A DNA stretch of 64,000 nucleotides, taken from the NCBI GenBank assembly GCA_964234715.1, contig OZ174275.1; one strand, written 5' to 3'. Below the pieces are notes generated by a model. It ran no database searches, had not been told where the DNA came from, and was given only the letters and a program-made list of their open reading frames with translations. Below are positions 19,332-54,020 of the stretch, piece after piece. The DNA comes from Podarcis melisellensis. Its lineage: Eukaryota. A program made the translations under genes and the position numbers. The number at the start of each line of letters is the position of its first letter. Positions within the stretch are counted from its first letter, which is position 1.

Positions 19332-19885
19332 CATCTTTTAGTTCTCAATCACACCCTGGGTAGACTTTGTGCCTGAAAGCATACTGATCAAACAGACAAG
19401 ATGTTTTGTTGCACAATGCACTGAGCTTGCAAGATCCTTTGATAAGATACTGTGTGGTTTTGTGTTGCCTGTGTACATTAGCATTCCACTTCTTGAAAAC
19501 CTCTGTCTCTCACCTGCAATGACCCTGTCAAATTTTCTAACGTCTATTTGGGGGGGAAATGATACATATGTGCCAACAGTGGGTTGCATCCACACTAAAA
19601 TTAGTTGATTGAACTTGGATCCCATGTAAATCAATGGGCAATTTACTCATGACTTTGTTCCCATTGTGAAAACAGAAGAATCTGCTAAAATTCAAATACT
19701 GCAATAACAATTCAAGCAAAATCAAGGTTCTTGCAAATTTGCAAACTCTTTGGTGTTTGTACAGTATCTTAGTGATGGGATCCATATTTGAAATGGACTG
19801 TGTTAACTTATCATCACAGCACAATTCAACAAGTGATGAAAATGAGTTGATTGTATTCTTATGTTTCCTCCCACAGAGCTACAAG

Positions 19886-28782
<8,897 letters not shown>

Positions 28783-30236: not shown

Positions 30237-33200
30237 TCAGTAGAGATCACTGAGTCCTGCCGTTTTTCTTGCTTTCTGCATGAGTGCCCGCAGCTGAAAC
30301 TGCTTGCGAGACAAGAGGCGGACGTGCTGAAAAGAAAAAACAGGCCAGGGTAAATCATCTGAGCATGATCCGCCAGAAGTTATAACATTTTAATTTGATC
30401 AACTTCAATGGGACATCTTTGTAATAAATGAATATTTAGGTCCAGATTTTGAATTTAAAGACAACTTGAAAAGTAAGATACCATTTTGATTGGCATTTTC
30501 TCTTTGACTGTATGTCCCAATAATTTCAATGGTGTAAATTTTGACATTTTTCGATTCTTATAAAATAACTTTGTGTAATGGTGCATGTAACATATACCAG
30601 TGTTTCTCAAACTTGGGTCCCCAGCTGTTGTTGGACTACAACTCCCATAATCCCTGATAACTGGTACTGCTAGCTAGGGATGATGGGAATTGTAGTCCAA
30701 CAACAGCTGAAGACCAAAGCTTCAGAAACCGTTTTCTAGACACGTGCAGTCACCCACACAATAACCTGAATCAGCCAAAATGGGAAAAGGTAAAGAGGGC
30801 ATTTGGTTGGCCATACAGCTACAAGCACATCCTCAAGACCCAAAAGCTGAAACTGATCCCACAAAACCTGACCAGACAGTGCATTAAATGCCTCACTCAG
30901 ACCTGTTACAACAAGAATATATACACAGTGGTCCAACTCATCATGGGAAGACAAGTTATTCTGTTCTACAGGCTTATATCTTCCTGGCTGTCCAGTGTGT
31001 AAGGTTCTAAACTACAGTTTTGATGATGTGTGTGAGAGATAACAACACTCTGGTACCATCCAATGCACTTGAAAAACCCTCCCCTCTTCCCTACATTTGA
31101 AGAGGCATTAGAGATAAGAACTAGGAACACAACTATTGGTTTCAGTGGACCAGAAAAACTGTACATGAACGTACCTTTGAATATTTACTCAAACCTACCT
31201 TTAGAAAGATATCAAGATCAATAACTCCACGCCTCAATGCTTCACCCAGGTAAAAGATGGTATCTTCAATGGCATTTTCCTCAGCATACAAGTTCAGAAT
31301 TTGTTTGTAAAGTGGCGCTGTAGGAACAATAACTTCGTCTATGTCATTATTTTCTGACTGACTCTCCATTTTTTCCAAGGCAGAACTCAGCTCTTCATCT
31401 TTCTTTTTCAGGAGGTCAATGTTCTTGTCAACTTCAGCCTAAAATAATAAAAAAAAATTATAGGTTTGTTTTAAGATGCCGTGAAACCTATTTAATCAAC
31501 ACCCTAAATTCCCTTTTAAAGTCCATGGAAGGGAGTCCCAGGTACCACAGGAAAGAGGTTTCCCTCCTGCCTTCAAACACCTCCCATTGCATGTGAAGAA
31601 ATTGCCCCCCCCCCCACTGCTCTGAGGGCAATAATGGCAAAAGAGGTTTCTGCCTGGGGAAACTTGGGACCCACTGAATCCCAAACTCTCCTGTTCCCAT
31701 AACATACCTCTGGAACGGGGGGGGGGGGAGTACATGGTACTGAAGCTGGTGTACTCAGTTTCCTGTCCTTTTGGCACTAGACGGGAAAACGTGGTGGTAG
31801 GCAGAGTGGGCAAAGGACAGGGTAGTTGCAAAAGGAAAAAAACCAGGATGGGTGCTACAACACCACCTTTTGCCCTGCCAGCATAAGGCCGGCAGGACTT
31901 TGGGTGTGGCAGTTTCTTTGCCTCAGTAGGATTGCTCCGTAAGACTTTAAGAGTATTTATGTATGAGAACAGCATTTAACTGCTTATTTGGATGTTCTCA
32001 AAATTTCACCATTACTGTGCTATCGACCTTGTAAATAAGTATAGACACAGGACAAATAATTGTAATGTCCCTGCAGTTTTATGACCACTATCCTCACCTG
32101 CAAATAATGAATCAGTGGTGAGGAATATATGGCTAGAAAGAAAAGGGCTACATTTTTCATTTCCTATAACTGCCTTACCTACCACACAATGGATGCCAAG
32201 AGCTACAGGCAACAGAATCTACTGCAAGGAAGGAAATGTTCCAGCTGCTTTGAGCAACGAAAAAGGCTTTGTTGTTTGAAAAGACATGGGAAGTCATGAG
32301 CCCAATGCTTTTAATTGCTTAAAAGGAAAAAAAACAAGGTATATGGCAAGCCTTTTCGTTTGCTTACCACTTCCTGGTCTAGGCGAGTTACCATCTCTTC
32401 AAGCTTTTGGTGACCTTTTTTCAAGTCTTCCTCTGTGCGCTTCAAGGCATTGAGCTCTGCCTGGGCACGGTCCATTTCTTCTTTCATTCTCCATCTCAAC
32501 TTATCACTGACTGCTGAAATAAGCGAAGCTCGAATGGTATCTTCGCTAATGGTGCCATCTCTGCTGGGACCTGTACAATAAGATTCAGTCACAGAATCAA
32601 CCCCTTCTACTTCTGAGGAGATTTGTAGGTCATGACAATCTGTTTGGCAAAGGTATTTGAGGCTAAAAAAACTAGAGTATGTTAAAACAGATTAATTTTC
32701 AGACATAACATTCCGAAAGGTGTACCCATGAACTTCTAAGTTGCTTAATAATCTATTGTACTTTCCCAACTTAAGGAGGTTCTGCCCATCTTCTCACAGA
32801 GTGCAACTGTGAACTTGAACCAGCAAATATTTTAAAAGCAACCATAGAGCTTTCAAGTGTTAGCTAACTAACACATTAGCTAACTATCACAATGAAAAAA
32901 CATTGTCCTTGAACACAGGTTTAGCTCTCAGCCACTCAAACTTTACTTTAGATACACCCCCAAATTCAAAATGTTTTAATGAAAACACATAATGCTTCTG
33001 TCAGATTACTTGCTCTGGTTATTGCTTGAGGAGCACTGAGTTGAGCTACAAACAATGAAACACTAGTTTATTTTTTATACAAATATTTCTTTTGCTTTTG
33101 CATCAACCATCATATAAAATATCTACAGTCATTTTTTATCACCAAGTTCACATGAAACCCCAAATGTTTGCCATGCACAAGATGGTCTTTCCTTATTAAA

Positions 33201-36200: not shown

Positions 36201-39200
36201 ATATATCATATAAATATATCTTAGAACCAGTTAGAACTTTTTAGTCAAAGCTGTTTATTTATGAAGCTTTTGTCTAGAGCTTAAATAAAGTCAGAGAAAT
36301 AAGTCTGCATGTACAAATATATGGTTTTAGATGTACAGAGAATAAGACAGGCTACCACCATATACCAATTCATACCAGGAGCACTTGATTTAAAGAGCAC
36401 CTTCAAGAACATGAACCCTTAACATTTTCAATCACTTCCATAATTAGCCACCCTTAGAGAAGAGTTACTGGCATGCAGCCATACGTCCAAGGGAAAACTC
36501 AGACATTTAACCTTTGCTATACAGAGTCTAGTTTCAGAGCTGACCTTATGGTACTGACCTTACAGTACTGCAGACTAGCAGTTGACTCAGACAGAAAAGA
36601 AACAGCCAAATATCAACTTGGCAATGGAAGAAACTGATGTTTAATTTAATTTAATAATGATGACTATATATCACCACCACCAGGACAATGTGAAATGTAG
36701 CATAAACAAAGTAATAATGGTGTATTCCTCAATTATTAACTAGAGAAGAATTTTAATTATCTTTTCAGTTGACTTTTCAGGAGGGGTATGATGTCAAACA
36801 AAATATTAACACTGAAAGATGGAAGTGCAAGATTAAACAGACTAAATTGCTTTAGCTGTATCAGAACTGCCAGAGTAGACAGTCCATTTAAAAGGATTAA
36901 TAGATTGTGGAAGTCCATCAGCTGGGGGCCCTATAACCAGTTTGAATGACTTCCAGAAAATATTGCCTTACTAGGCCTCTGTTTAGTTGAACTTCAGGTA
37001 AGATATTTCTTCAGATAAGGTAGTAACCCCCACCCCCACCCCACAAATTAAGTACCTTAAGATTAACACCGACATAAACCCTTAATATGCAGCTTATATT
37101 CTTGAGCAAAAAATGCATTCTCTGAGAATAAAAAATGAAAGGAAATATATCATTGATATCAGCCTGGGGTCAATCTTTACTGAACCTTTTACCAGGCAAT
37201 GCCAGGAATTTAACCTGACACATCTTCAGCAGACAAAATATCTGCTCATTGAGCTATGGTCTCTTCTTTCTCAGACCCTGCTTCTAGTGGCACAACATAA
37301 AAGGTTGGAGAGCCCTCCATAATGGCCCCCATGAGCTGCAAGGAATTTCCAGCAGAAGGAAATTCCACCTCTTGCCCAGTGGAAGTGGTTTTCACTTGTG
37401 CATTGGGATCCTACTCCATGATAACATAAGGGAGCTCTGAACATCTGAATGTTAATATATCTACGGAAAGAAATCTTAGAAGAATGAACCCTGATATCCA
37501 TCTCTACTAGTCTTTTTAGGGGATTCCATTCTAATTATATAACTGCTACTTACCCCCCAAAGCTTAATTAAGTCTGCAAATCAAAGAGACCCTGTGGAAG
37601 ATGTTGCTCTGCTCACTGCTATATTCCAGTTTCCCAAGAAACTGGAGTATTCCAACAAGAACAAAGATTTCTGAAAGGCTACCTTGTTCGTACAGATGTG
37701 CGAGCAAGGGAGACGCTGTGAGCTAACATGAAAATATAAGAGCAAACTTAATATTTGTTGCTCATTCATAAACATGCAACATACTTGAAATACTTAATAC
37801 CAACCATAAGTAAACCATATATAGTACTCAACAGCAGTGATAACTGAATTTTAACAGCCCCAACAAAATGAATACCATGGATCCAAAAAGCAACACTGTT
37901 TTGCCTGAAAGCTTTCCCTTGCATTCTCCCAAAAAACCACCCTTGAGAGTAGAGGGAACCTCAAGAACAGTATGGGATGGGTGGTGCGGAAATGCAGTTG
38001 AAGGGGGAGATCGGTAAGCTGCCTTGTGCAAGTAGAAGTCCTTTCAACTTATGTAAGACAAAGTCTGGATCCAAAGCTTTACTTTTATCTCATGCTGATA
38101 ATGGTCACCAATTACTGGTAGCAACAGCTCTTGAAAGTTTTGCTTTAATAAAATTATGAGTAGTAGTAGCTTACTTAAACACACTATTTTTATACAACCT
38201 AAATATAGCTGAGGAAAGTATCACCATTTCTGGGATGTTTGACTGAATCAAGAAGTGTTTCAAAAAGTACAATTAGCAACCCAAAGTACATCTTTCCTCA
38301 ATCGTCTTTATAAAAATAATTCACATCATTCAGTACTAAGTGTTCACTAACAAAGAATGTAAGGACTAAGAAATAAATACTAGTATTTTATTGTTAGAAC
38401 ACAAATCTCCAAGTTATACAAATTAGATGGATCAAACAGCATTGCCCAACATCAAAAAGGTAGAAAAGATAGGCCCAGATCCATACTGGAACTTAACGTC
38501 CCTACTACAAGCAAGTATTCAAAATGAAGACTATAGTCAGTTGTAAGCACCAGTAAGCGCCTGCCATGTCCTTAAGGGAATGAGCTGGATTGCACTATAA
38601 ACATGTAGAATTCTGCTCCTGTCCCTCCCAAAGGCTATATAGTTCTCCCCCAATCTAGTGGGAAATTTCCAGAGTGGTATGCAAAGAGAGGTTATGTAAA
38701 AAAATATAAATGTAATCCAAGCATTCATCTTAAACTGCAGTAAAGTTCAATTCTAGTCTGCTACATTCTATTCCTGTTGCCCTTGCATTCCAGAATCACA
38801 TTTGTGCTACTTTTTAGCTCCCAACATCAACCTACAAGATTGATATCATATTTGGAAGTACTGACCATTTAAAACCACAATACTAACAAATCCAGAATTC
38901 GTCTGGATATTGTCCTGATTTCAGAGAAGCTGGGAAGGTGAAGTAAGCCACTGAAGTTAAGCTCTCTCTTGTTTGTGAAAGGCACATTACATCATAAAAG
39001 CAATTTACATAAAATGTGCTACCGAAACACTGAAGGATATTGTCTCATGTGGCTTCAATCACAACCAACTCTCCTTAAGAATAATCAAGTTCACGGCAGG
39101 GTTCTTTTAAAATAAAAAAGCATATGCTTCCCTGTAATTTGTTTCCTAGTAAATACTAACGGTGATTGTGAAAAATGGTCGTTCTATTAGATTATATTTT

Positions 39201-42200
39201 AAAAGCAAATTCTGATGCAGATGATCTGCCTTTTTTCCAGGAAAGGTAACACAGTAATGCCAAAGCAAAAGATGGCAAAACTGCCATACAGTCACTTTCA
39301 GACAGTTCAACAAGCTTCAAGGTAACCAGAAAATGTACCTTCACACAGTTTTAACAAGTGCCATAATAGCTATGAGCAGTCATGATCTTTTGCAATGAAT
39401 GTCTTGCAGAGTAACATTTAAAACTTTCAGCGTCTAAAACTTATATAGGATTTTGGATTTGACATTCCTGGTTGAATAAGCCATGAAGGAGCATCTGGTG
39501 CAAGTATCTGGTGTTTATGCTGGTTTTAGTACTTTGAGCCCAGGCTCTTTAACTCAGTTTCCCATTATGTCTGAAATTGGGAGCACTGGTTTAATGTTGA
39601 TTACTAACCAGCATCTGAAATCTGATTTGCAAACTTGTATTAAACCTCAATTCCCCATTTCAGAGGAAAGTGTGACTTAAAAGCAGCTTGGGCTGAACCT
39701 GGCACACATGGGGAGGCAGGAATAAGCTTGATGCTTATTCTTGCTTAATGAACTATGGTTTATTAAGAATTTTACCTCTGAGCCTGCCATATGTTAATAA
39801 ACACTCATTAAGCATAAGTGATTAACATATAACTAGAGTAACATGTGAGTCCATGTATAATGAAGCCCTAATGCTTCAGTTTGTTTTCCTGCTCTAGTCA
39901 GACTCACCTTTTCCAAAGTTACATATTTTTTATGATGTTTTTTCCTGATCTACCCACATAAAATAGCTTTGTAAGCTATTACTGCACCCATATTTTAGGT
40001 AGCTATCACCTCATGCTATTCACTGAGCATTTTTCGGATGGGAATATCAATCAGGGAAACTAAACTGCTTGGCAGTGTCTCTAAGCACACTGTAGAAGCA
40101 AACTGAATTCAGTGGGGTGGGGAAGTAAACAGAATTTAAAAAAAACAACAGTTAAATATATCAGCAAATGTCTTACTGCAGTGGTTGCAGAACAATGCCA
40201 CTAGCAATTACATTACTAAATTAATACCCACCACCATATTAACAGTGCAATTCCACTGCCTGAAAATTCAAATTACCAGCGTTCACAACCTTCTAATAAT
40301 CTCTGTCTGTAGAGACCTTCCATACTTGCTTAAACTGAAATCTATTATTCTTTCTCCAAAGAAAAAGTTAGATCAAAGTCTCCAAAACACTTAATAAATC
40401 CAGGTTGAAGACATCTGTGCCACTTTCAGACAAGAGAACACCATCTAGATGGAACAATCCTGGAGACTCTGGGACAAGTGAATCGTGTTTGATTATAATC
40501 CCTCCAATACGTTCCATAAAACTGCAGATTTCCCGATTTACTCTCTTCCTGCTTTTCTCCATAAATTCATGGGACATATCTTGGTTCCATGCTTTGCGGG
40601 GTACAATATTAGACCAGACAAGGATGCTGTTCTTGAATGTTATCTTAATATGTATTATATCTTTCTTCATTTGTCTTATGATATCATAATCTGCGTATGT
40701 CCCAAGGTCATTTCCTCCTAGATGGATCACCAATATATCAGGATCTGTTAGACGCCGCCGTGTGTGCAATAGGCTGGGTATCAACTGATCCCACGTCATG
40801 CCACTCTTTCCTAGCCAATGTAGTTTGGCATCCTCCAGTCGAATGCCCAACTGTGGGCCAAAGCTTCTTTCAAGTGCTCTTTTTTCTGCCCAGAAAACGT
40901 AAGAATGACCACATATCCATACCTGTTTCTGCTTTCTTCTGCCATCTGCTATTAAGAGAACAAACATACATTAATGCTTCATAAATTTTGTGGCCCAAGC
41001 ACCTCCTGAAAACTTTATTCAGTGTTGTCTGAATTATTCCATGTAAAAATCAAAACATGAGACACCTCTATCTTAAAATACATGGCATAATAATCCATAA
41101 AGTCAACTCTTTATTTGAAGATTGGTGTGTAAAGTTTACAGGTAAAAATGCCTGCATTCAAGTTATAAGATCAATGGAAAGGAATGCATGCTCATGTACC
41201 CTTTTGATCAATCTTACAAGAGTAAGTGAAAATATCTTTTCTAAATAAAGTTGCTAACAATCCATTTAGATCTTGATAAAGTATATAGGTTTGATAGATG
41301 TGCTCTACTCAGAATGAAGTTCTTCCAGATTTTTTTCCAAAATTAACAAAAGGTCAGGAGCAGAAGTCCATACCTTTCAAGCAGACCAAGAAGAGAAAGC
41401 TTCGACTGTTAAGAAAGCCCAGGGAGCAGAGTTATACTTCTCTATTAAATCTTATGTAGAAATTTATGTAACCATTTCCACGCTTTGCCTGACAGGATTA
41501 ATTTTTGTTGCCACATCACACCTCCATTTCTAAAAATTCATTTTCTGAACAAAACGCTAGAAAGCTTGCACTAGGGATAGATTTTCTATTACTGCCCTGA
41601 AAAAATAGTAATTTGATCTCTTCTAAACAATGTAGACCTCCATTATTAAACTACTGAAAATTATCAGTTTTACATTTCCCCTGCAATTTTCAACTTGTTT
41701 TTGTTCCTGACATGCAATCCAGTCAATTTTCTAATTGTAAAAATGGTTTTATTGTTTTTAGAGTTTGCATCTTTTGTATTTGATCTTATTGTACATAGCT
41801 TCAATAGCATATGGCTCTGAAGCAGTCCATAGACCTGTAAAATAACAATAACGATAATAGTAATAGCTCAACAAAAGTGATGATAATTTTTGGAGTTCAA
41901 ATATATTCTATGTGACATTGGACAAGAAAATAGTGGATGATGTGGCCAGGGATCTTGCAGTCTTTGTGCTAAATAATAATGTGCTTTCTAAATTATACTC
42001 TTTTGAGGGTTTCAAGTTTTTGCTTATCACTAGAGGCAACAATACGTTCAGATTCTTAGGACTTCTCTCCTGAACAGGTCTGGTAGTTCTGGGCTAAGCA
42101 GTAAAACAGGTGAGCAAGCATTTCAGCACCCAAGAATTACACTGAATGTGAAACAGAAGAAAGCTGTTGATTGGCACCTTTAGCTTACAGATCAACAAAC

Positions 42201-45200
42201 TTCACAAGATGAAGATCTGGTGATGGTAGCTGGGCTACTTCATGAACGGCACTTCTACATTTGCATCACACACAAAAAGAGTGGGGGGAAATTGCAGTTT
42301 GGGAGTGTACTGGAAAACACGATGGGGGTCAAGGATAGCTTGGCTTGCTTCCAGTTAAGCACGGAACTCAACTGTATTTTCAGTGCTGACTCGACAACAA
42401 TCAAGGCTTCTTCACATCATCCTTAGGTACTGTTCTCCATCCTTGGCTGACATAGCAAAAGGCTTGTAAATAGGCTGTAGTACTGCATCTTGGCTGCAGT
42501 TACTCCACACTGGCTACAGGCCTCTTCATTCTTGTGCCCAAATGATGCTGCTGTTCAAGTTCCTGGTACATTCAGTGGTGTGATCAAATGAAACCCACCC
42601 CTTTCTCATCATTGAAAAGTTCATGACTACAAGATCATTCCCCCAGTTAATAAGAACATAATAAATATGTAGGCTTAAAAAAAGAGAGGCTTCGGGCTTT
42701 AATTTATCTTGGACCTGCAAACATAATATTTTCAAACACATGTGAACTTCATTACATAAAACAGTTCAATAAAAAAGAAGTTTGTTGAACAGAGAAAAGA
42801 GTTAATGATTGTTCCATCAATCAAACAATGGAGAAAAAAATGAACATCTAGCATGGTTAAAGTGCAACGTAACTGATGTTTTTGCCACGAGGCACTTAAT
42901 GCCCATCTCAGAAATAGGTGTATTTGGATTTGCTTTATGCTGTATATTTAGAATGAGCAATCTCATTGCATTCGGAAAAAGACACTTTCAAAGCTACTCA
43001 CCCACAGTAGTTACAGGAGGTTGAGAAGGGTAGTGTTGTGTGCTAGTTGTTGGTGGAAATGATCCGCTAGGGGGAGGGTAAGGATAGCTTGGGTAACCAC
43101 TTGAAAGGGGAGGGGGAGAAAGACACAGTGTTATGCATTCTTTAGTTAATATTTCCATCCATAAGCATTTTTTTTTTTTACGTTTAAAAAATTTATAATA
43201 GACAAACAGAATTTTAAAAAGAGCCACTGATGCAGATATAAACGGTCAGAGTAATATTCAAGACCATGAGAAATTTGTCGTCATCCATAGATTTCAGAGG
43301 TATCAATGTTTTAATCAATGTTATTCAGATATGTATAAATAAATTTCAAGTTCCCTGATCAAAGTTTCTTCACATTTGTGGATTAAAGCTGAAGACAGGT
43401 AGAGGCACTCAGACTAATTATTCACAAGAACTAACTTAGTTGGTCTTTAAGGTGCTACTGGAAGGAATTTTTTGTTTTGTTTTGACTATGGCAGACCAAC
43501 ACGGCTACCTATCTGTAACTGTAATTATTCATGGTTCATTCTGTTAGCAGTTAACAGGTTTGTACTTTGTTGCATTATTTTCATTTGAAAAGGTCTATGT
43601 TGCCTTGGTGGTTTCATTTACAGAGGGGAGACTGAGCAGGCTTCTCCAACTGCCAGAGCATGTACACATTTTAGAGTTTCTGCATGCTACGTTACTTTCC
43701 TCAAAAGTTAGTGCCCTCTATTTCCACTCAGTTGGTGTCATACACTCCATTTTCAGAATCAGTTATATAATGCATATAGTGATGGCAGAGCTAATAAGCC
43801 ATCAATAGTAGGAAACTAGAGACAATAATACCACAGGATATGAAAAAGGGAGATACAATACAGTACATGTGGGATTTCTACACTCAGAACTGTGTCTATT
43901 GTGAACAAGCCTTACTGTTTAATTCATTGTACTAACACTAGCCAACAACTAAAGGGAGAAAATGAGCCGATGTGTAGAAATAAAGCAGTCCTCAGTCCTC
44001 TTCTGTCTCCATACATTAAAAGAACATGTGCAAAAGGTAGCAGTGTGTTATATCAAGGTTGGTGTTAGACTTTAGTAGACTCTCAGACTGGGCCTCTCTC
44101 AGTTCCCCTGCCCAACAATGTGTCTTCCCTTGGGCACTCTGCCCACCAATTCTGCTGCCACCAGTCATTTCTCACTCCCTCCGGTTGTGCTTATCCAGCA
44201 GATGGCAGCGGTGTTTTTGATGGAAAACTCAGCTCCGATCTTCAGCAGCAGATGGCTGCCATCTCAGAGACCCCAAATGCAATGCCCGTTTGTGAGCACT
44301 GCATTTTGGGGGTCCTGAGATGGTGGCCACCCACCACGGACTGGAGTTTGAGTGGTGGTTTGGCTCCCATATGAAAATGGCACCTGCTGGTGGAGGGTAG
44401 TGATTGGTGCATTGGACAGAGATCCCAACAGTGGTGGAAATGCCAGGCAGGGTGTCAATGGGGGTGATAGCAAGACTGGCATCAGCTCCAATGGGGCCCT
44501 GCCAGAACACATGGGCTGTAGCAGTTGCTCCAGTACGTTGGGTTCTAATCCTGGGTCTGTTTTGGAGTTGCTCCACCACCAGTGCCCACACTGTCTATTG
44601 CTGGCTCCACCCTCAGACTTATACGTATTGGGCAGAAAGTCTGAAGGGGAAACTTACACACGTTCAGCAGAAGGTACACAGGCTCCTCCATGTAACTAGG
44701 AGTCCTGTGGATGTGTGGATGCAAATTTTGTGGAGGAGCCTGTGTGCATGAAGCTGAACTTACATACATTCTCCCAACAGATCTTCTGCCCAGTGCACAA
44801 AGGTCTGGGGGATGAGCTGGAGGGAACAGAGACATCAGAGACAGAAAAAAAACATGCATAGCTGTGCACCCCCCTACATGTGTTCTTTTAACATGGGAGG
44901 CCTAGGTTTTTTATATATAAAAGTCCTCTCATAAGGAGAGGATGCAGCCAAATAATGTTAAGAATGCAAGAAACAAGCTGAAAAGTTTTATAAAAAGGCA
45001 AGAACGTAAGTCATTTTAGAAGTATAGGTTTACAATGACACCAATTTTGCTCACTATACACTTAATCATTGCTTTACCCAAATGAAGGGGCCTTAAATGC
45101 AACCAGGGTTTTTGATGACTGTATTTAAATAACAACATATAAAAGACCCTGACAACACCTAGACAAAACTGAACTCAAGATGAATGGAATACAAATCTAA

Positions 45201-48200
45201 TGCTTTTAAAGTCCATCACTCTCAACTTCAGAAATGGGCACAACATCACATTGTCCAATATTGCCAGTGTAGTCTATTGGATCAGCAGATTCAGAAAAAC
45301 TATAGCTTACCTTGGGTTAGGTGGTGGTCCAGGAGGGAAATGAGGCATTCCACTTGGCATTCCTGGCATATAGGAAGCTGTGCACAACAACGTCAAACAT
45401 TTTAACAATTTAGGATAGTGTTGTTCAATTATATAAAATTATCTTTACAAATAAGTAGTTAAAAATTAATTGGGTTGCCTCTACTCAAGGTAAATCCACC
45501 AAATGAATGGAAATAATGAACTTAGGTCTATTTCTTTCAATGGGTTGAGTAGAACTTAGTTGAATACATCGCACTAGGTTCGATCCAGACTTCCTGTGAG
45601 CAGAAACCTTCTGGGGGGAAAGGAAGATGCAATGTTTCCCTATTCCTTCCTGATATTTCTAACCCCTGAAAGTTGTTCTGGAGGACAAGGGGAGAGGGGC
45701 ATTCTATGGAAGACCATGGAAGTTGGTGCTGAGACAAGAGGCAACAATCACTTTCCCCAGTCTCCACTGAACCTCAGTCCACTTTTGGAACAGAAGCAAC
45801 TGTTTTATTAATAGAATGACAACTATTGATGCAGCCCATTTGTAATTTCTACAGTTGTAAAAGTTATTTTTTAATAGCCCAATTGAAGAAAATGCAGAAG
45901 GAAAGAAAAGAAAAAAGAAGTCTTCTTGACCCCTGCCCCACCTTCAGAATAAGCAAACAGCAGCCCAGGAAACCATTCCTGTTCCTAGTCTTCCCTGTTG
46001 TGCTTGCACTTATTATGCATTTCAGTTACTTTACTCTTGCTGCATAAGCCAATTCAGAGTGTTCAATTATCCCAATTTTTCCTTACACATATTCAAATCC
46101 ATAGGTGGAATTCAACATCACATTATTTCAATTGTTCCCTTGGTGCAAGTGTTTTTGCTTGCTTGGCAGAACAATCTCCCCTCTTCTCCTCCTGCAGTCT
46201 GGGGATTTTTCCTCCCAAAGTGGATAGTGTGGGGAGACCCCGCCGTGCTACTGGGAGTCCTTCCACTGGCTCCTGCTAGTACAATTGTTTAGTACTTTAA
46301 TTGAATCCAGTCCTATATAACCAGGGAGTCCTTACAAACAAGTCATTATTAAAATGAAGCAATTAATCTAATAATAAAGATTACAATGTTCATACTAAGA
46401 GCTGGATCTATAGAGTTGGTTCCAGAATTGTGAGGGGAAAGGTCCACTTGCCCCTTCCTCCCTGCTGCAGCTCACGACACCCCTTCCAAAAAATCACTTG
46501 AAATTTGGGGAGTTTCTGCAGTGGTCCAAGATGGGACATGAGGAAGAAATCAATTAGATGTGATGTGTGCTTTGCATTCATTAAGTATAAGTAACACATC
46601 CCACACTCCAATTTAAGACAACTTAGACTGCACTTTGGGGCTTTCTCCATTATGTTATATCTCTCACTGCACCAACTCTACATGCAGTGCAATGAAGTGT
46701 TCTGGAGAATCTGAAAACTTGCTCACTATTAATATTACATTTCCAAGGGTCCTAATGAAGCTATTTCCCAACTGTGGTTTTGCACACCTCCACCCCCACT
46801 GAAGACCAGGACAGCTACCTATGATTTTTAAAGTGATGGTGTCAAAGCATTAGTGTTACTTTCAAGCTGGCAATATATAGCTTTACTAGTTCTGAAGTCG
46901 AACTCCTGGCTATTCTATATTTGGCTGACACCTACTGGCAGAGATGATATTCTCTGGTGGTAAAAAGTACTGTACAATGAGAAGGCTTTTTGCAATGCTA
47001 AAATGGCAGAAAAGAAAGCAAATTTAACTTTCCTCGAGTGTTCAGCATTGGTACATCTAACAATGGCAGGTTTTTGTTCTATAAAATGAATTTCCCTACA
47101 ATAATACCTGTTTTCAAACTGGTATAAGTATACATTTCAAATAAATGCCCTACACATCTTGTAAAATAGCACAGTAAATTCTTGTAAAATAATTAACAGT
47201 TGTAGGAACATGTTTTTCTCAGAAGTTGAGAGCAATGGAACATAAAAGATACCAAAGTGAGTTTTTAATTTGATTTGCAATTAAAAGAAAAATAGTATAA
47301 ATAGTATAACTCTGCTAGCATTATAAAATAAATAAGTTTCAAAAACAATGTCATAAGAGGATAAAGGTACTGATAATGGCAAAATATTAGCATGAATAAT
47401 GTTTGAAAATAGATCAAGGATCAAATGAATTGTAGCAATGTTGTTGATGCTAAAAAACAACATCTTTCATGGAAATTTATTTATAATCAAAACAGTTATT
47501 AGGCAGCATGTTCAAAATATCTAGCCTAATTCTCTACATTTAAATAAACCAAACTCTGAGCTGCTGGTAGCTGAAAAAGATTACACAGAATGAATATTGG
47601 CTATACAACTTGTGCTCTGGATTGGGCAATTGGCAGCAGGGATACTTTATGTTTAAACCAACAACATAACTACATATTTAGAAACCAATACTACAATAAC
47701 TAGATCCTTTCAACAATACACCGTGCCATTATTCTACTTGTTTTCATTGCAATTTGCAAGTATATGGGGTACAAGGTACTTACAGTTTGGTGGTCCTGTT
47801 GCCTGGTAAGGTGGGTAGGCTGCTGAAATGGTAGGCCGAGAGAAGACTGGAGGTTCTTCTCCAAACACCACAATCATCACTTGAATCAAGCCAATCAAAT
47901 CTGATTGTGGCTAAGGGGAAAGCATATAAAAATCTCTTTGCTTTTTTAATCCCACAAAGATAAACAATGACAATGCATCTATCACCTTGTCAGTTATAGG
48001 TGGTCATTTGGTTACTCTATTTGTAGGTTTTGGTCAAGTATATTCCAATTCAGGTTCAATGACTAACTGATAAAAATTAAAGTGTAGCATATCACTGAGA
48101 AAGTACTGATGAGAATATGAACCCTAACCCCATATTAATTATCGGCAGCAATTAAGACATTTTATGGCAGGCCACATTTCAATTGCAGGTCTCATGAATG

Positions 48201-51200
48201 GAGATCAAATATGACAAAAGCAGTAACACAATTAGTACTATGTAAGAGTGCTAAGATTTTACTCAATAGAGACCCCAGTTTCCCAGTGTCACATCTTTCT
48301 GCTATAACAAATGACCAAAGGAGAAAGAAGAATATTAAACAAAACTGCTACTTAAATGGTGAAATAATTTAGGACTAATGATTAAGAATTTTATAATTGT
48401 ACTTACATGTTTCCATTCATGTAGATATGGAAGGTATATCTTGCCATTTGCATCCACGTGCTTCCCAGTTTTAATTGTCATTGAACTAGTTGGCTTAACA
48501 AAACAGATTGGTGGATTGTATGGATATGTATCCAACAGCCACAGACATATTGGGATATTGTATGTGTTACCTGAAGAAGTTATTTAAAAAAAAAGATGAA
48601 TGCATTATTATTTTCTCCTTCTGACAATATATTTTAATGCTGTGAAATAGGAATGATTACAAAAGCTGCCCTTGTAGTGATGGAAGGCCATCTAACCTCC
48701 ACTAACAGAAGCAGGCTGCCCTCCAGTCCACTGTTCTAGAAGTCTCCTTGAGCCCCTCTCCCAGGGTACATGCAGGGAAGGGGAAATTCCATTGGACACA
48801 TTGTGCTAATGAAAAAACTTTGCTGGACACTGCACAAAGAATAGGAAAATCTCCTGTATGTGGCAACACAAGACAGTTGTACAAAGGTCCAAAACTAAGA
48901 ACAAAGCATTCAGAACAAGTTAGTGACCAAGCTGATCAAAGTAAATGATGTAAGCTTTCAAGTAATGTACTGGCAATCTACCCAAGACAAATACATACCT
49001 TTGTAATTTACAGGAATGGTTCCTGTGAGGCTCATCAGTTCTCTTGATGAACCATCATTAAAAACTGAAAAGAAGAAAAAAAAGTGTTATGCAACCTGTT
49101 CATTTTATAGTCAGATAACAAAAGTTGCATGCATGCTTAACAAAACAGAGACTACTTTTCTTCAAACACTTCTCTATATACAAGCAAGCATCTTCTAGGA
49201 AAATGAACTAATAACACCACACAATATTAGAAATGGCGAGCAAATTATTGTGTGACATAGGCAGATCTGCTCCATACAATTCTAGCATCTATAAAAAATA
49301 AAATTGCTATTGTAGCCTTCAAAGCAAAGCCTAAAAATGAGCAATACTATTTTCAAGTCAAGTGGGCAGTGGTACTTCAGATGTTGCTGGACTACAATCC
49401 CATCACCCCTGATGGAAGAAAAGGTTTCCCTATTACCATTTTGCCAAAAAGCATGTCTCAAATAATTAGCACAGTACAGGGGTGGCCAACCTTTGGTCCT
49501 CCCTATGATCCTTAACTATAATTCAAATCTTCTCTGACTGTTGGGTTTGCTAGCTAAGGCTGACTGCAGTCTAACAAGATCTGGAGAACACCAGGTTAGC
49601 TACCCTGGTCTATTAACTTATCTTATTTCTTCTTTGTCATAAAATTTATTACACAAAATATGATATACTGATAGGGAACTGACATAGGCTAGCTAACAAA
49701 AAATACTGTACAAAAAAGAAAAGCATAACATAAAACTCACCATATCCATCCATTACAGGCTTGAGGTCTTTGTACTGGGTAATAACACTGACAGTTTCCT
49801 GAACAGTCAAGTCTCTGTACTTGTACTAGGGGGAAATAGATTTTGAAAATCTTAAAGCTCCACTAAAGACAACTTCCACTGAAAACATTTAGACTTCTTT
49901 CAACACAACTATAGTGACTAGAGAACAAGATCTGCACAGTCTTCCACAGCAGGTAAGATACTACACAGTCATACCTGTTACGTTTGCTTCATGTAACATT
50001 GTTTCAGGTTGCGTCCCATGGCAACCCGGAAGTACCGGAAATGGTTACTTCCAGGTTTAGCCATGTGTGCATGCACAGACACGCAAAATGACGTCACGCA
50101 CATGCACAGAAGCAGTGAATCGCAACCCACGCATGCGAAGACGCACCGCTGCAGGTTGCGTTCCTTTCATATTGCAAATGGGCCTCTGGAACGGATCCCG
50201 TTCGCAACCAGAGGTACCACTGTAACTACTTTTGTATATAGAACCACTTTGCTGAATTACAGCCAGAGATTATAGAGTAAACCTGACCTGCCAGGATCAA
50301 GTATAAGTGGTATGTGATGATGCAAAGTGAATCAAACTCAATTCTACAATTAGGATGCTCTAGTGAAATGAGACTGTCCACAATCCAACATGTTCTTTGT
50401 CTTGTGGTAAGCCGACACAGTTCTACAAAGAAAATGAACACACTTATGAATTAATGTAGACCACTGAACAGATTTTTAAAATTGTTGATGGCAATGAAAT
50501 AAGTAGAGGATTGTGTCTCTATGACAGAGGCACATATTTAGTCCAACATCTCTGCAAAAGCCATCTTTCTCTACCTCAGCCATCCACACACAGCGCCAAC
50601 TGATCCAGAGCACTCTCATGCCCCACTCTTATCTCTGTAGCCTCCCACTCTCCACTGGACAGCAAGAAAACTGATCCCTTCAAGCTCCTCTATCAACTTT
50701 GCTCATCTACTTGAGCAATCTCAGTTCACAACTCCCTGGTCTTAAGGTCTCCTTCTATGGGAAATGCATCCAGAAGACAAAAATGTATCAAGGAATTAGT
50801 GATCTGTTCCTTCGCCCCTCCCTTGCTCTTGTTAAGTTTTTTGATGGTGTGAGAACGGTCTGCTTTAATCAGCTGCATTAATCAGTTGGAAGCATAGTAC
50901 TGGGAACCTTCTTTGACATTGGACATTGTTTTGAGAAGGTGAAGCACTGGGAGAGGGTGGCTAATGGATGATCTGCACATAGCCAGTCTGGAAAACCATA
51001 CCTGCTACCTATGGTTTGGGCAGAGTTTCTTTGAAGCTCCTGCACAGACTGATCGGCTGCAGGGCTGTGCAAAGTGAGGCTACCTGGGGGAGTTGCTTTG
51101 CCACTTCTTGAGGGCTTCCAAATGGCAGGTTGAAGTGCTTGCTTGGTATGTATACATTGCTTGCTGTTTGAGAATAAAATCTGTAATCTTCTCGTTCACT

Positions 51201-54020
51201 TGTGTTTTTTGTATTGCTTCTGAATCTCATTTTAAAAGAACCACCTTGCCTTTGGTTTTAAGACCAACAGCAGTCAACTTCTGTGGCCACACTGCTCAGA
51301 AAGCAGTACCAGAGTTTGCACTGCTGCCACCACCTGCCTTTATGCATTATAATACAGATTTACTCTGATCTGCTAACATGACCAAGTAAAATCAGCTGTG
51401 CAGAGCCAGCTAGCAATGTACTAGTGACTTTCTACCTTTAAGACAGTCACCAACATTCACGTCCAATTAATTACCAATATATTTGTTTATCTGAAGACAA
51501 TGAGAGTTATGCAGCCACGAAAAAAGGGAATAATGCAAGAATTAATATTTTAAGAATTATGAATAGTATCCATGTTCTATACCACACTAGCTCAACATTT
51601 AGAATGCTCTTGAACAAGTTTCAAATATTCAATCCTATGGTTTATCACTAATTTGATAAAACCAGTCTAATTCAGTGTCGCACTAGCACAAACATCAGTG
51701 CAAGCATTTCTACAGAATAATCTCCCCTCCCCCCTCCCAGTTCTGGGGGTTCTCCTGATCCCCCAGCAGGATAGGAGAGAGAAAATCCCATTGCACTAGT
51801 GGAAGCCCTTGTGCTAGCTCCCGCTAATGCACCCACTTAGTTGAATCTGGCCCAAAATAGCATAGTGCTAGCTAAGAAGCAAAGATGATATGCAAATTTC
51901 TACTCATAATCTTTAACAACAAAAAGCTGACAAAATACTGTCCCCACCCTGTTAGAAATGTATGTTAAAGGTTAAAATCACAGGTGTCTAATCAGGCAAT
52001 GATGCATTCTTACATTCTACTTCCTCCTCTTCATTCAACTTGTTACAAAGTAATAAGGTGGTTTTGCAACTTACTTGCCAATTAAGTATAGAATGGATCA
52101 GAAAATGACTCAGGGGAGAATATGCACATTAAACCTGCTGACTACTTAAATTAGCTTCATCCAACTAAAGGATCAGCTGGATGAGTAAGGCTGCTGTCCT
52201 ACACACATTTACTTGGGAGTAAGTCCCACTGAACTCAACTGAACATGAGATGTAAGGCTGCAAATTTAAGCACGCTTACAGCTCAATTCCTATATGTTTA
52301 CTCAGAAGTCAAAACCAGGCAGATAGCCTTCTCAGTGGTGGTGCCTGCCCTGTGGAACGCCCTCCCATCAGATGTCAAGGAAATAAACAACTATCTGATT
52401 GTTAGAATACATCTGAAGACAGCCCTGTGTAGGGAAGCTTTTAATGTCTGACGTTTTACTCTGTTTAATATTCTGTTGGGAGCTGCCCAGAGCGCCCAGT
52501 CAGATGGGCGGGGTATAAATAATAAATAATAATAATAATTACTACTACTGAATTCAATGAAGCTTACTCACAATCAAGAATAAATTAAAATTAAATGGCA
52601 CTCACTATTTAGGTTATTCTTTAAGTACTATGCATTAATAATTATTAAAGAAGGAATAAGAGTTTGTGTTTTCAATAAACTTAATTCCACTGTAGCACAG
52701 CAAATAAAAATACAGTACAAACAGCTTCATTTATTAACAATTTAACAACAAACCTACACTGAACTTTGCAATTCAACTGAACTTTGGTTTGATACTGATA
52801 CCAGTTTGGCATTCTCATCCAGGTTTTATCATGAATCTAGTCACCTTTCATCAATGTTCAGAGCCTTTATGTTCTACTGATTTCAGCAGAAGAATAAAGA
52901 ACATTAACAACCTTCTCCAAATGAAATTCCCAGCACAAAAATGTTGCTTATACAAGGAATTAGTGAAATAAGCTGCTGGGTGGCATCCTTTTCTTTGTAA
53001 TTGACAGACCGGTATTCCTATAACCTGGTAAATTTAACCCTATAGTAAATTTCTTACTTTTTAGTGTTTTAAAATTAAATGTTTTAACACAAAGTACCTT
53101 AGAGTCATTAAAGCTCCCAAGTAACTGTACCCAGCTGCTGTTAACAGATGCCACACTAGGTCAACTTGTGTTAATTCACAATTTGGGCCCAAAGTACCTT
53201 TATACTCAACCTTGATCACTGAGATTCTTTGATGGTAACTAACCAACTCCTTCACCAACCTGAATGATCTCTGCTCACTTGCTGAGTTACATACGTATTT
53301 TTAAAATGTAGTAGTAGTAGTAACAACACCATAATCAAATTTGTGTTTATTTAGACTTTAAAAACTCCTAAAGAACTTGCTTACTAGTTTCCATGATTCC
53401 TTTAGCGACTAAAAGCTTAGTCGTACCCATGTCCCTCATTTCAGAACGGAACTTAGCTTTAAATAGGCCACAAAGGGCAGCAAATGACTCTGGAAACCCA
53501 CAAAAACAAAACACCCAACTGAAAACTTGGGAGAGATCGCAACACGCCCATTATTTTCCTGTAATAACTAGGGAGGCCTCAAAGAGTTAGCAAAAGGCGT
53601 TGGGCGCTAAGGGTGATCCCTTTTTGGACTGGGCAGACCAGGGACTATTTCGGCTCGCTCTTTCCCTTTGCGGACTCCCAGGAGGATCATTCTCGCCACC
53701 CACGAAATTAGAGACCCTTCCCATTCCTGCTGCCAGAAAGCCGGCCTCGTTTATTCGCGTCTGGCTAGGATATTTTTGTGGGGTTTTTTCCCCTCTGGCA
53801 GCAGGAAGAAGGGAAAGATAATGACTCAGGAGGAAGTTTCGCTCGGGAAGCGGCGTGAGGTGAGGGGAGAGGGGCGGCCTGGAGGCCCCGCCGGGTGGGC
53901 GAGCGCGGAGGAAGCCCCGAGGCTGTTCCCCCGGCAGAAGCCCGCTGGGAGGGGCTCCCCGGCCGGCCTCGCCGTTACCTTGCCAAGCATCTTCTTCAGC
54001 TGGCTCTCCGACACGGCCAT
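30237..54020 (-). CDS. TSG101: Tumor susceptibility gene 101 protein (ESCRT-I subunit), 393 aa, 10 exons
   Basis: Minus-strand exons 53979-54020, 49741-49825, 48999-49064, 48407-48570, 47784-47910, 45311-45377, 43002-43099, 32368-32570, 31199-31438, 30237-30326 (1182 nt), all [18 protein letters not shown] start, UEV domain ([15 protein letters not shown]), Pro-rich region, coiled coil, PTAP motif, steadiness box, ends KTAGLSDLY*. Confidence 0.98.
30598..30731. mobile_element. hAT-type palindromic MITE, same core family
   Basis: cagtgtttctcaaacttgggtccccagctgttgttggactacaactccc...gggaattgtagtccaacaacagctg. Confidence 0.8.
33480..34200 (-). mobile_element. Possible highly decayed L1/Tx1-type LINE remnant
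   Basis: Purine-rich minus strand; [10 protein letters not shown]...W..PIPYFL loosely resembles the ORF2 C-terminal end of squamate L1-like elements. No intact ORF. Confidence 0.3.
40368..40948 (-). CDS. SGNH/GDSL hydrolase-fold domain exon (DIRS/Ngaro-type); predicted alternative terminal exon of TSG101
   Basis: Uninterrupted ORF with block [13 protein letters not shown], block [11 protein letters not shown], block [17 protein letters not shown] and block [10 protein letters not shown]. Preceded by tgtttgttctcttaatAG|CAG| acceptors (exon start 40948 or 40945), both in phase 1 like the TSG101 exon 7 donor. Stop TAA at 40368-40370; AATAAA (minus) at 39759-39764. Confidence 0.75.
43425..43521 (+). 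mobile_element. Penelope-like element terminal fragment with TSD
   Basis: aacttagttggtctttaaggtgctactggaagg...cagaccaacacggctacctatctg resembles lizard Penelope pLTR ends; flanked by taattattca at 43415-43424 and 43522-43531. Confidence 0.65.
44600..44825. repeat. Imperfect palindrome (MITE-like) in TSG101 intron 6
   Basis: Perfect 15-bp arms acacaggctcctcca (44676-44690) / tggaggagcctgtgt (44731-44745), extended by degenerate outer arms. Confidence 0.6.
49966..50222. mobile_element. Tc1/mariner (Tigger-like) MITE
   Basis: Termini cagtcatacct / gaggtaccactg followed by TA (50223-50224); internal gcaacccggaagt and gcatgcgca-like motifs. Confidence 0.75.
52311..52548 (+). mobile_element. L2 LINE 3' end
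   Basis: [14 protein letters not shown]-type ORF2 terminus, then gatgggcggggtataaat and a (taa)n tail; inserted into an older ttactcagaagt...actgaattcaatgaagcttactc repeat. Confidence 0.85.

Follow-up and report, generated by a model that had tools for sequence, protein, structure and literature searches.

An alternative last exon joins TSG101 to a transposon-type SGNH domain in lizards and other amniotes

Several described systems resemble an alternative last exon of TSG101 that was recognized in a DNA stretch of 64,000 nucleotides (nt) from Podarcis melisellensis (GenBank assembly GCA_964234715.1, contig OZ174275.1; the whole stretch is called here the window) and that encodes a domain of the SGNH fold. 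Lyosin is a fusion isoform of L1 ORF1p and MYL4 in sauropsids (Kitao et al. 2025, PMC12129022). In both cases a conserved host gene acquired an alternative coding exon by exonization of an apparently ancient retrotransposon open reading frame (ORF), purifying selection was detected, the native activity was lost (probably so for TSG101) and losses were lineage-specific. The TSG101 case differs from Lyosin by its likely donor, an SGNH ORF that comes from a tyrosine-recombinase (Ngaro-like) element instead of L1 ORF1, by its position as a last exon which replaces the complex-forming C-terminal half of an essential core protein of ESCRT-I, a complex for endosomal sorting, and by an apparently older, amniote origin that includes mammals. 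TSG101 is not mentioned in the Lyosin paper (PMC12129022).

SGNH ORFs of Ngaro-like elements (DIRS order; DIRS-53_XT, bioRxiv 10.1101/2021.08.05.455354) share with the TSG101 domain a GHS block I, a GGND block III and 35–43% identity. In contrast to such elements, the TSG101 locus is devoid of reverse transcriptase (RT), RNase H, recombinase and repeats, represents a single orthologous copy and has lost the catalytic His. The ORF1p esterase of ZfL2-1 (PDB 4c1b; PMC3905857) displays the same fold, but is an active enzyme whose triad is intact, and comes from a non-LTR (long terminal repeat) element. Among animals, the OSK domain of Oskar sets a precedent for an SGNH domain that is not an enzyme; it is without the Ser and binds RNA, whereas the TSG101 domain has kept the Ser and lost the His. 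The TSG-5' fragment and the TSG-delta154-1054 variant are, similarly to the isoform described here, truncated TSG101 proteins without the parts required for ESCRT-I assembly and can act in trans; they are engineered or aberrant products, whereas the SGNH isoform is a conserved natural product with an added folded domain. Literature searches, covering mainly open-access papers, found no description of TSG101 together with SGNH, DIRS, esterase or exonization, and no conserved functional alternative product is described in reviews on TSG101. The TSG101-SGNH fusion is already present in public automated annotation as an unnamed isoform that has not been discussed.

The coding part of the SGNH exon is located on the minus strand at 40368..40948, within intron 7 of TSG101, and codes in 581 nt for an SGNH-fold domain of 192 aa followed by a stop codon. 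Exon 7 (43002..43099, 98 nt) ends in phase 1, and its single donor serves both exon 8 and the SGNH exon. Exons 1–7 of TSG101 amount to 649 nt with GT-AG at all splice sites, and addition of the SGNH coding sequence gives 1230 nt and a protein of 409 aa. These coordinates, phases and lengths, proposed in a first-pass annotation made from the sequence, were recomputed and agreed. The acceptor signals that it had described were also present, and were conserved in seven other amniote loci. They consist of a branch-point-like CATTAAT (40970..40976) upstream of the exon, kept as (C/G/A)ATTAA(T/C) in all orthologues, and of a pyrimidine tract with a tandem TAG-CAG (NAGNAG) acceptor (40946..40969), the sequence of which, TTAATAGCAGAT, is identical in lizard, snakes, turtle, crocodilians and manatee.

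Reads joining 43002 to 40948, for which the first-pass annotation had suggested a search, were seen among the raw reads of run X23, and the same joint was found in a contig of run X13. X23 is a stranded RNA-seq run of a close relative, of which about one eighth was read. Four reads with four different starts crossed the joint, and 80 reads joined exon 7 to exon 8. Depth in this run reached about 100 at exon 7, was 0–4 in the intron that follows and about 8–12 on the SGNH coding part, and dropped at 40948; first mates all mapped to the plus strand, in agreement with minus-strand RNA. The X13 contig, from a second organism, had a depth of 10.9 versus 172. Roughly 5–10% of the flow out of exon 7 goes to the SGNH isoform in the samples read. 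No 43002–40948 joint was listed from a single-cell run. In run X1 (interval 39200–43029), a contig of 9257 nt contained intron 7 in unspliced form at a depth of 25, compared with 441 at exon 7, which may be due to pre-mRNA or to a retained intron in this sample. Both acceptors of the tandem had been predicted to open the SGNH frame. The one at 40948 was confirmed by reads; the one at 40945 was not among the joints listed from reads, being either absent or under the listing threshold. Isoforms of 408 aa with the junction VTTVDGRRK or VTTVDARRK exist nevertheless in databases for several species, and junctions with and without Ala both occur.

The 3' untranslated region of the SGNH exon spans about 2 kb (38370..40367, end approximate), as estimated from RNA depth and the X13 contig. 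An AATAAA about 600 nt past the stop, which had been noticed before, is indeed present (39759..39764). RNA depth passes it without a fall as far as the edge at 39200, and the X13 contig extends another 815 nt beyond that edge, to about 38387. A second AATAAA is located there (38387..38392), in a stretch that aligns with a snake locus, and this distal site was taken as the likely main poly(A) signal. A main 3' end near 39740, as proposed earlier, is not supported by the bulk RNA depth. A small single-cell pile-up at about 39623–39763 makes a proximal end at 39764 possible, as a minor or conditional one at most.

Orthologues were searched for with the SGNH exon alone and with a database fusion protein (P0014). 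Fusions of 406–409 aa were identified in more than 40 species in the automated NCBI/UniRef annotation, under the name of TSG101 isoform X1 or X2. They come from lizards, snakes, geckos, an amphisbaenian, turtles, alligator, crocodile, echidna, six marsupials, manatees and tenrec. The SGNH domain of the window is 97.9% identical to the proteins of Podarcis lilfordi, raffonei and muralis. In the loci of Sceloporus, king cobra, pig-nosed turtle, crocodile and manatee, the exon follows exon 7 at 1.9–5.3 kb behind an identical acceptor, and in the six loci with exon 7 in view it lies in the same TSG101 intron. The ORF of this orthologous intron, whose state in other species the first-pass annotation had proposed to check, is intact from lizards to manatee. 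Together with the RNA, the orthologues rule out an assembly artefact or a chance ORF. Since the fusion occurs in both mammals and reptiles, its gain is placed at or before the amniote ancestor; judging from the sequences, the exon is thus amniote-ancient and not squamate-specific, which amends the first-pass annotation, and the isoform would be about 320 million years old. No amphibian or fish orthologue was obtained in the protein searches, and no amphibian TSG101 locus was among those compared. Some gene models deviate from the fusion. For the turtle (L001, 10001–10957), the SGNH exon was given a gene model of its own that starts with a different first exon, and predictions from Lerista and Chelonia (P0166, P0231) continue the SGNH frame into exon 8; all of these are probably prediction artefacts.

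The exon was lost in part of the amniotes. Intron 7 of the sperm whale (L010, 41861–42766) contains a remnant (nhmmer E 8e-87, 80–90% identity to the manatee exon) that carries stops and frameshifts, is interrupted by an insertion of 384 nt and has a change in the second AG of the acceptor. In intron 7 of the ostrich, no SGNH remnant was detected by tblastn or nhmmer, with a gap of 72 N where the exon could be; because of this gap, the loss in birds rests also on the absence from annotated bird proteins. No fusion protein of birds or boreoeutherians was among the hits, though many of their canonical TSG101 proteins were matched. One genome of each group and the annotation together point to a loss across birds and Boreoeutheria. 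A non-coding stretch of intron 7 (36397–36548), which aligns to turtle, crocodile, Sceloporus and ostrich, is kept in the ostrich, where the SGNH exon was not seen.

Selection on the exon was evaluated by the ratio of nonsynonymous to synonymous substitution rates (dN/dS, omega). Pairwise values were 0.17–0.37, and a codon model gave an omega of 0.31 with a log-likelihood of -2501.3, against -2553.8 at omega 1, which was rejected. The expectation of a dN/dS well below 1 for a domesticated domain was thus borne out. By segment, omega was 0.17 for residues 1–80, 0.54 for residues 81–155 and 0.09 for residues 156–192; no segment exceeded 1 in this segment-wise analysis of eight sequences without a site model. 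We hold with high confidence that the TSG101-SGNH isoform is real and under selection.

The nearest non-orthologous sequences of the SGNH exon display about 35–44% identity. The element context was examined for one of these relatives, from the caecilian Rhinatrema (P0025). Its SGNH ORF (42% identity to the TSG101 exon, E 2e-55) follows gag-like, RT, RNase H and broken tyrosine recombinase (YR; HSFRIGAA motif) sequences, and the element sits between terminal direct repeats of 235 nt (one repeat pair found). An order of gag, RT, RNase H and YR followed by SGNH is the one described for amphibian Ngaro-like elements (bioRxiv 10.1101/2021.08.05.455354). The Rhinatrema element is further flanked by two 97% identical blocks of 4.7 kb (L008, 1438–6154 and 13872–18570) and contains an internal inverted repeat of 159 nt. 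In the window and the orthologous TSG101 loci, tblastn gave no hits to remnants of RT, RNase H or YR, and no repeats were found at the locus, in line with the first-pass annotation. In a tree of about 190 domains, the TSG101 set has a support of 1.0 and a long stem, and the neighbouring nodes have 0.22–0.75. A direct Ngaro donor is likely from these comparisons; alternatively, the domain may have been transferred through another domesticated copy. A young dispersed copy, one of many near-identical DIRS/Ngaro sequences, was rejected in view of the orthologous position, the omega of 0.31, the lack of a second copy in the window and the at most 44% identity of the nearest non-orthologues. Splicing, shared position and purifying selection all agree with the earlier proposal that a domesticated transposon domain was captured as an alternative terminal exon.

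Other members of the family were met in the same searches. A clade of 21 teleost proteins (support 0.93; e.g. P0021, P0024, P0029, P0031, P0249) has a related C-terminal SGNH domain with the catalytic His mostly kept; many of these proteins are 1300–2000 aa long with CSDE1-type cold-shock domains and likely represent a second, independent domestication. Large uncharacterised proteins of geckos (P0013, P0015, P0019) and clupeiform fishes (P0017, P0110) contain 3–7 tandem SGNH-like domains without the usual block V motif and are further candidates. Two caecilian proteins (P0059, P0033) have a C-terminal SGNH domain with an altered block I (GDS) and without the standard block V His.

The fold of the domain was predicted with a pLDDT of 95 in the AlphaFold model, for which Foldseek gave a TM of about 0.7 to GDSL lipases, TesA and PAF-AH. 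The Pfam match to Lipase_GDSL_2 was below the cut-off; among PDB sequences, the family profile matched the ZfL2-1 retrotransposon esterase 4c1b best (E 4e-10). The first-pass annotation had reported all four SGNH blocks. Three of them stand: Ser15 of block I (codon 40904–40902), Gly46 of block II (also Gly49) and Asn79 in the GGND of block III (40712–40710) are invariant in the orthologues. Block V does not. Catalysis by SGNH enzymes requires its Asp-x-x-His, which is D279/H282 in ZfL2-1 (PMC3905857), and these residues align with Asp168 (40445–40443) and Leu171 (40436–40434). The motif reads FHLDGVLLS in the window and LFHL(D/N)GVLLS in the orthologues, compared with LYRxDGVHLS in the relatives. 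Leu occupies the site of the catalytic His in 47 of 47 distinct TSG101 orthologues, and His is kept in 109 of the 119 block V matches of relatives. The Asp is replaced by Asn in 11 of the 47 orthologues (Anolis, Pogona, geckos, one Podarcis, crocodilians and Afrotheria), and the same change at 40445 was present in reads of organism A. An active canonical hydrolase is unsupported by such a block V. With Leu in place of the His and the Asp often changed, the domain is probably a non-catalytic pseudo-esterase. The strong constraint on Ser15, the oxyanion residues and the block V segment fits a pocket or a surface kept for binding, and the segments lining the pocket are the most constrained of the domain.

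The database fusion P0014 contains the UEV domain (PF05743), and exons 1–5 are common to both isoforms. The canonical exons 8–10 (30237..32570), which encode the coiled coil, PTAP and the steadiness box, are excluded from the SGNH isoform, and the fusion proteins are without PF09454 (Vps23_core). The isoform keeps the UEV and the proline-rich region and loses the coiled coil, the internal PTAP and the steadiness box. Coiled coil and steadiness box build ESCRT-I and control the turnover of TSG101. The SGNH isoform should hence bind ubiquitin and PT/SAP motifs, not join ESCRT-I and escape clearance through the steadiness box. Binding to liposomes of acidic membranes was reported for the ZfL2-1 esterase even when its active site is mutated (PMC3905857), and N-terminal TSG101 fragments block the Gag-Tsg101 interaction (PMC3766686).

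We infer the following sequence of events. Before the split of mammals and reptiles, an SGNH ORF, probably of a Ngaro-like element, came to lie in sense orientation in intron 7 of TSG101 and was recruited as a last exon that is used alternatively. Exon 7 is joined to it in a minority of the TSG101 transcripts, which finish at the poly(A) site of the SGNH exon; with this site and no exon junction downstream, they should be translated. The probably dead esterase domain would serve as a non-catalytic binding module for a lipid, a membrane or a partner, most plausibly acidic membranes or an acyl ligand, as suggested by the liposome binding of mutated ZfL2-1 and by the net basic charge of the TSG101-SGNH orthologues. 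The isoform would act as an adaptor or competitor independent of ESCRT-I, tethering ubiquitinated or PT/SAP-bearing proteins to membrane or ligand, and this tethering would tune the recruitment of ESCRT-I. Such a domesticated, non-catalytic binding domain on a UEV and proline-rich adaptor outside ESCRT-I is proposed here with moderate confidence.

Several points weigh against it. The four junction reads are a small support, and run X1 shows an unspliced intron 7 instead. The fusion protein is predicted from RNA and gene models. A pure competitor at 5–10% of the transcripts would be weak unless stabilised or enriched in some tissue. The exon is dispensable in sperm whale at least, and apparently in birds. 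The supports of 0.22–0.75 around the TSG101 clade fall short of naming its sister group and donor family. Finally, His166 is fixed in all orthologues two residues before Asp168, where the transposon copies have Arg, and could be a relocated base.

The isoform could also be a restriction factor, sequestering PT/SAP late domains of enveloped viruses or binding Ngaro/LINE particles by means of its transposon-derived domain, and lost where its target vanished. Its architecture resembles that of TSG-5', an inhibitor of late-domain budding, its patchy loss (whale remnant, no bird hit) recalls the patterns of L1TD1 and Lyosin (PMC12129022), and residues 81–155 evolve faster, with an omega of 0.54. 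Such a role is unlikely, considering that no segment of the eight sequences has an omega above 1, that expression was low in the runs seen and that the exon was retained in marsupials, echidna and Afrotheria. We know of no active Ngaro elements in these groups.

That the domain still is an enzyme, an acyl-hydrolase or deacylase brought by the UEV to ubiquitinated cargo and using Ser15 with His166 (or His14) as base, is rather improbable. The invariance of Ser15, Gly46/Gly49 and GGND, the replacement of the transposon Arg by a fixed His166 and the omega of 0.09 for residues 156–192 would all suit an enzyme, and SGNH proteins with non-canonical triads are known (PMC10792757). However, His166 in the alignment with 4c1b lies two residues before the acid and off the position of the base, and Asp168 repeatedly becomes Asn, even between close lizards.

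A purely regulatory exon, which would lower full-length TSG101 by intronic polyadenylation with an incidental peptide, would be in agreement with the very conserved splice signals, the long 3' untranslated region, the unspliced RNA of run X1 and the tight control of TSG101 dosage (PMC7073217). An incidental peptide would, however, not preserve 192 codons without a stop or a frameshift in species from lizard to manatee at an omega of 0.31, and this frame broke quickly in the whale once the constraint ended. The regulatory exon is largely refuted by dN/dS and regarded as very improbable. That the SGNH exon is a small independent gene inside the intron, with its own promoter and start and with the TSG101 junction as a by-product, is scarcely credible. 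An in-frame ATG is present upstream, at 40967, and separate NCBI loci exist in Carettochelys and Mauremys mutica, but this ATG falls within the pyrimidine tract and is missing from the turtle and crocodilian loci, the depth of RNA goes down at 40948 and reads join exon 7, and most annotations give the TSG101 fusion.

The remainder of the locus is as follows. The window contains no N letters. LDHA is encoded by its plus strand, and TSG101 by its minus strand, from exon 1 at 54020 to the end of exon 10 near 30237. Upstream of exon 7, TSG101 comprises the coding part of exon 1 (53979..54020, 42 nt), exon 2 (49741..49825, 85 nt), exon 3 (48999..49064, 66 nt), exon 4 (48407..48570, 164 nt), exon 5 (47784..47910, 127 nt) and exon 6 (45311..45377, 67 nt), with which loose RNA read ends at 43103 agree. 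The exons of LDHA (about 19800–26000) stand tail to tail with TSG101, and the manatee, crocodile and ostrich loci are arranged alike.

TSG101 is essential and heavily studied for its part in endosomal sorting, cytokinesis and the budding of enveloped viruses. As a tentative reading, amniotes other than birds and boreoeutherians may carry a built-in decoy for ESCRT-I, or an adaptor to membranes, in the form of a transposon-tailed TSG101, which might restrict the late-domain-dependent budding of viruses or retroelements. This would be the first domestication of a tyrosine-recombinase retrotransposon hydrolase in vertebrates and one of several, next to the CSDE1-like proteins of fish and the multi-SGNH proteins of geckos. 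On this reading the isoform would have escaped notice owing to the loss of the exon in mouse, chicken and probably most model mammals. TSG101 would thus have a second isoform, made with a retrotransposon domain and missing, through loss, from the lineages that most laboratories study, and transposon domestication would be widened to the hydrolase domains of DIRS/Ngaro elements.

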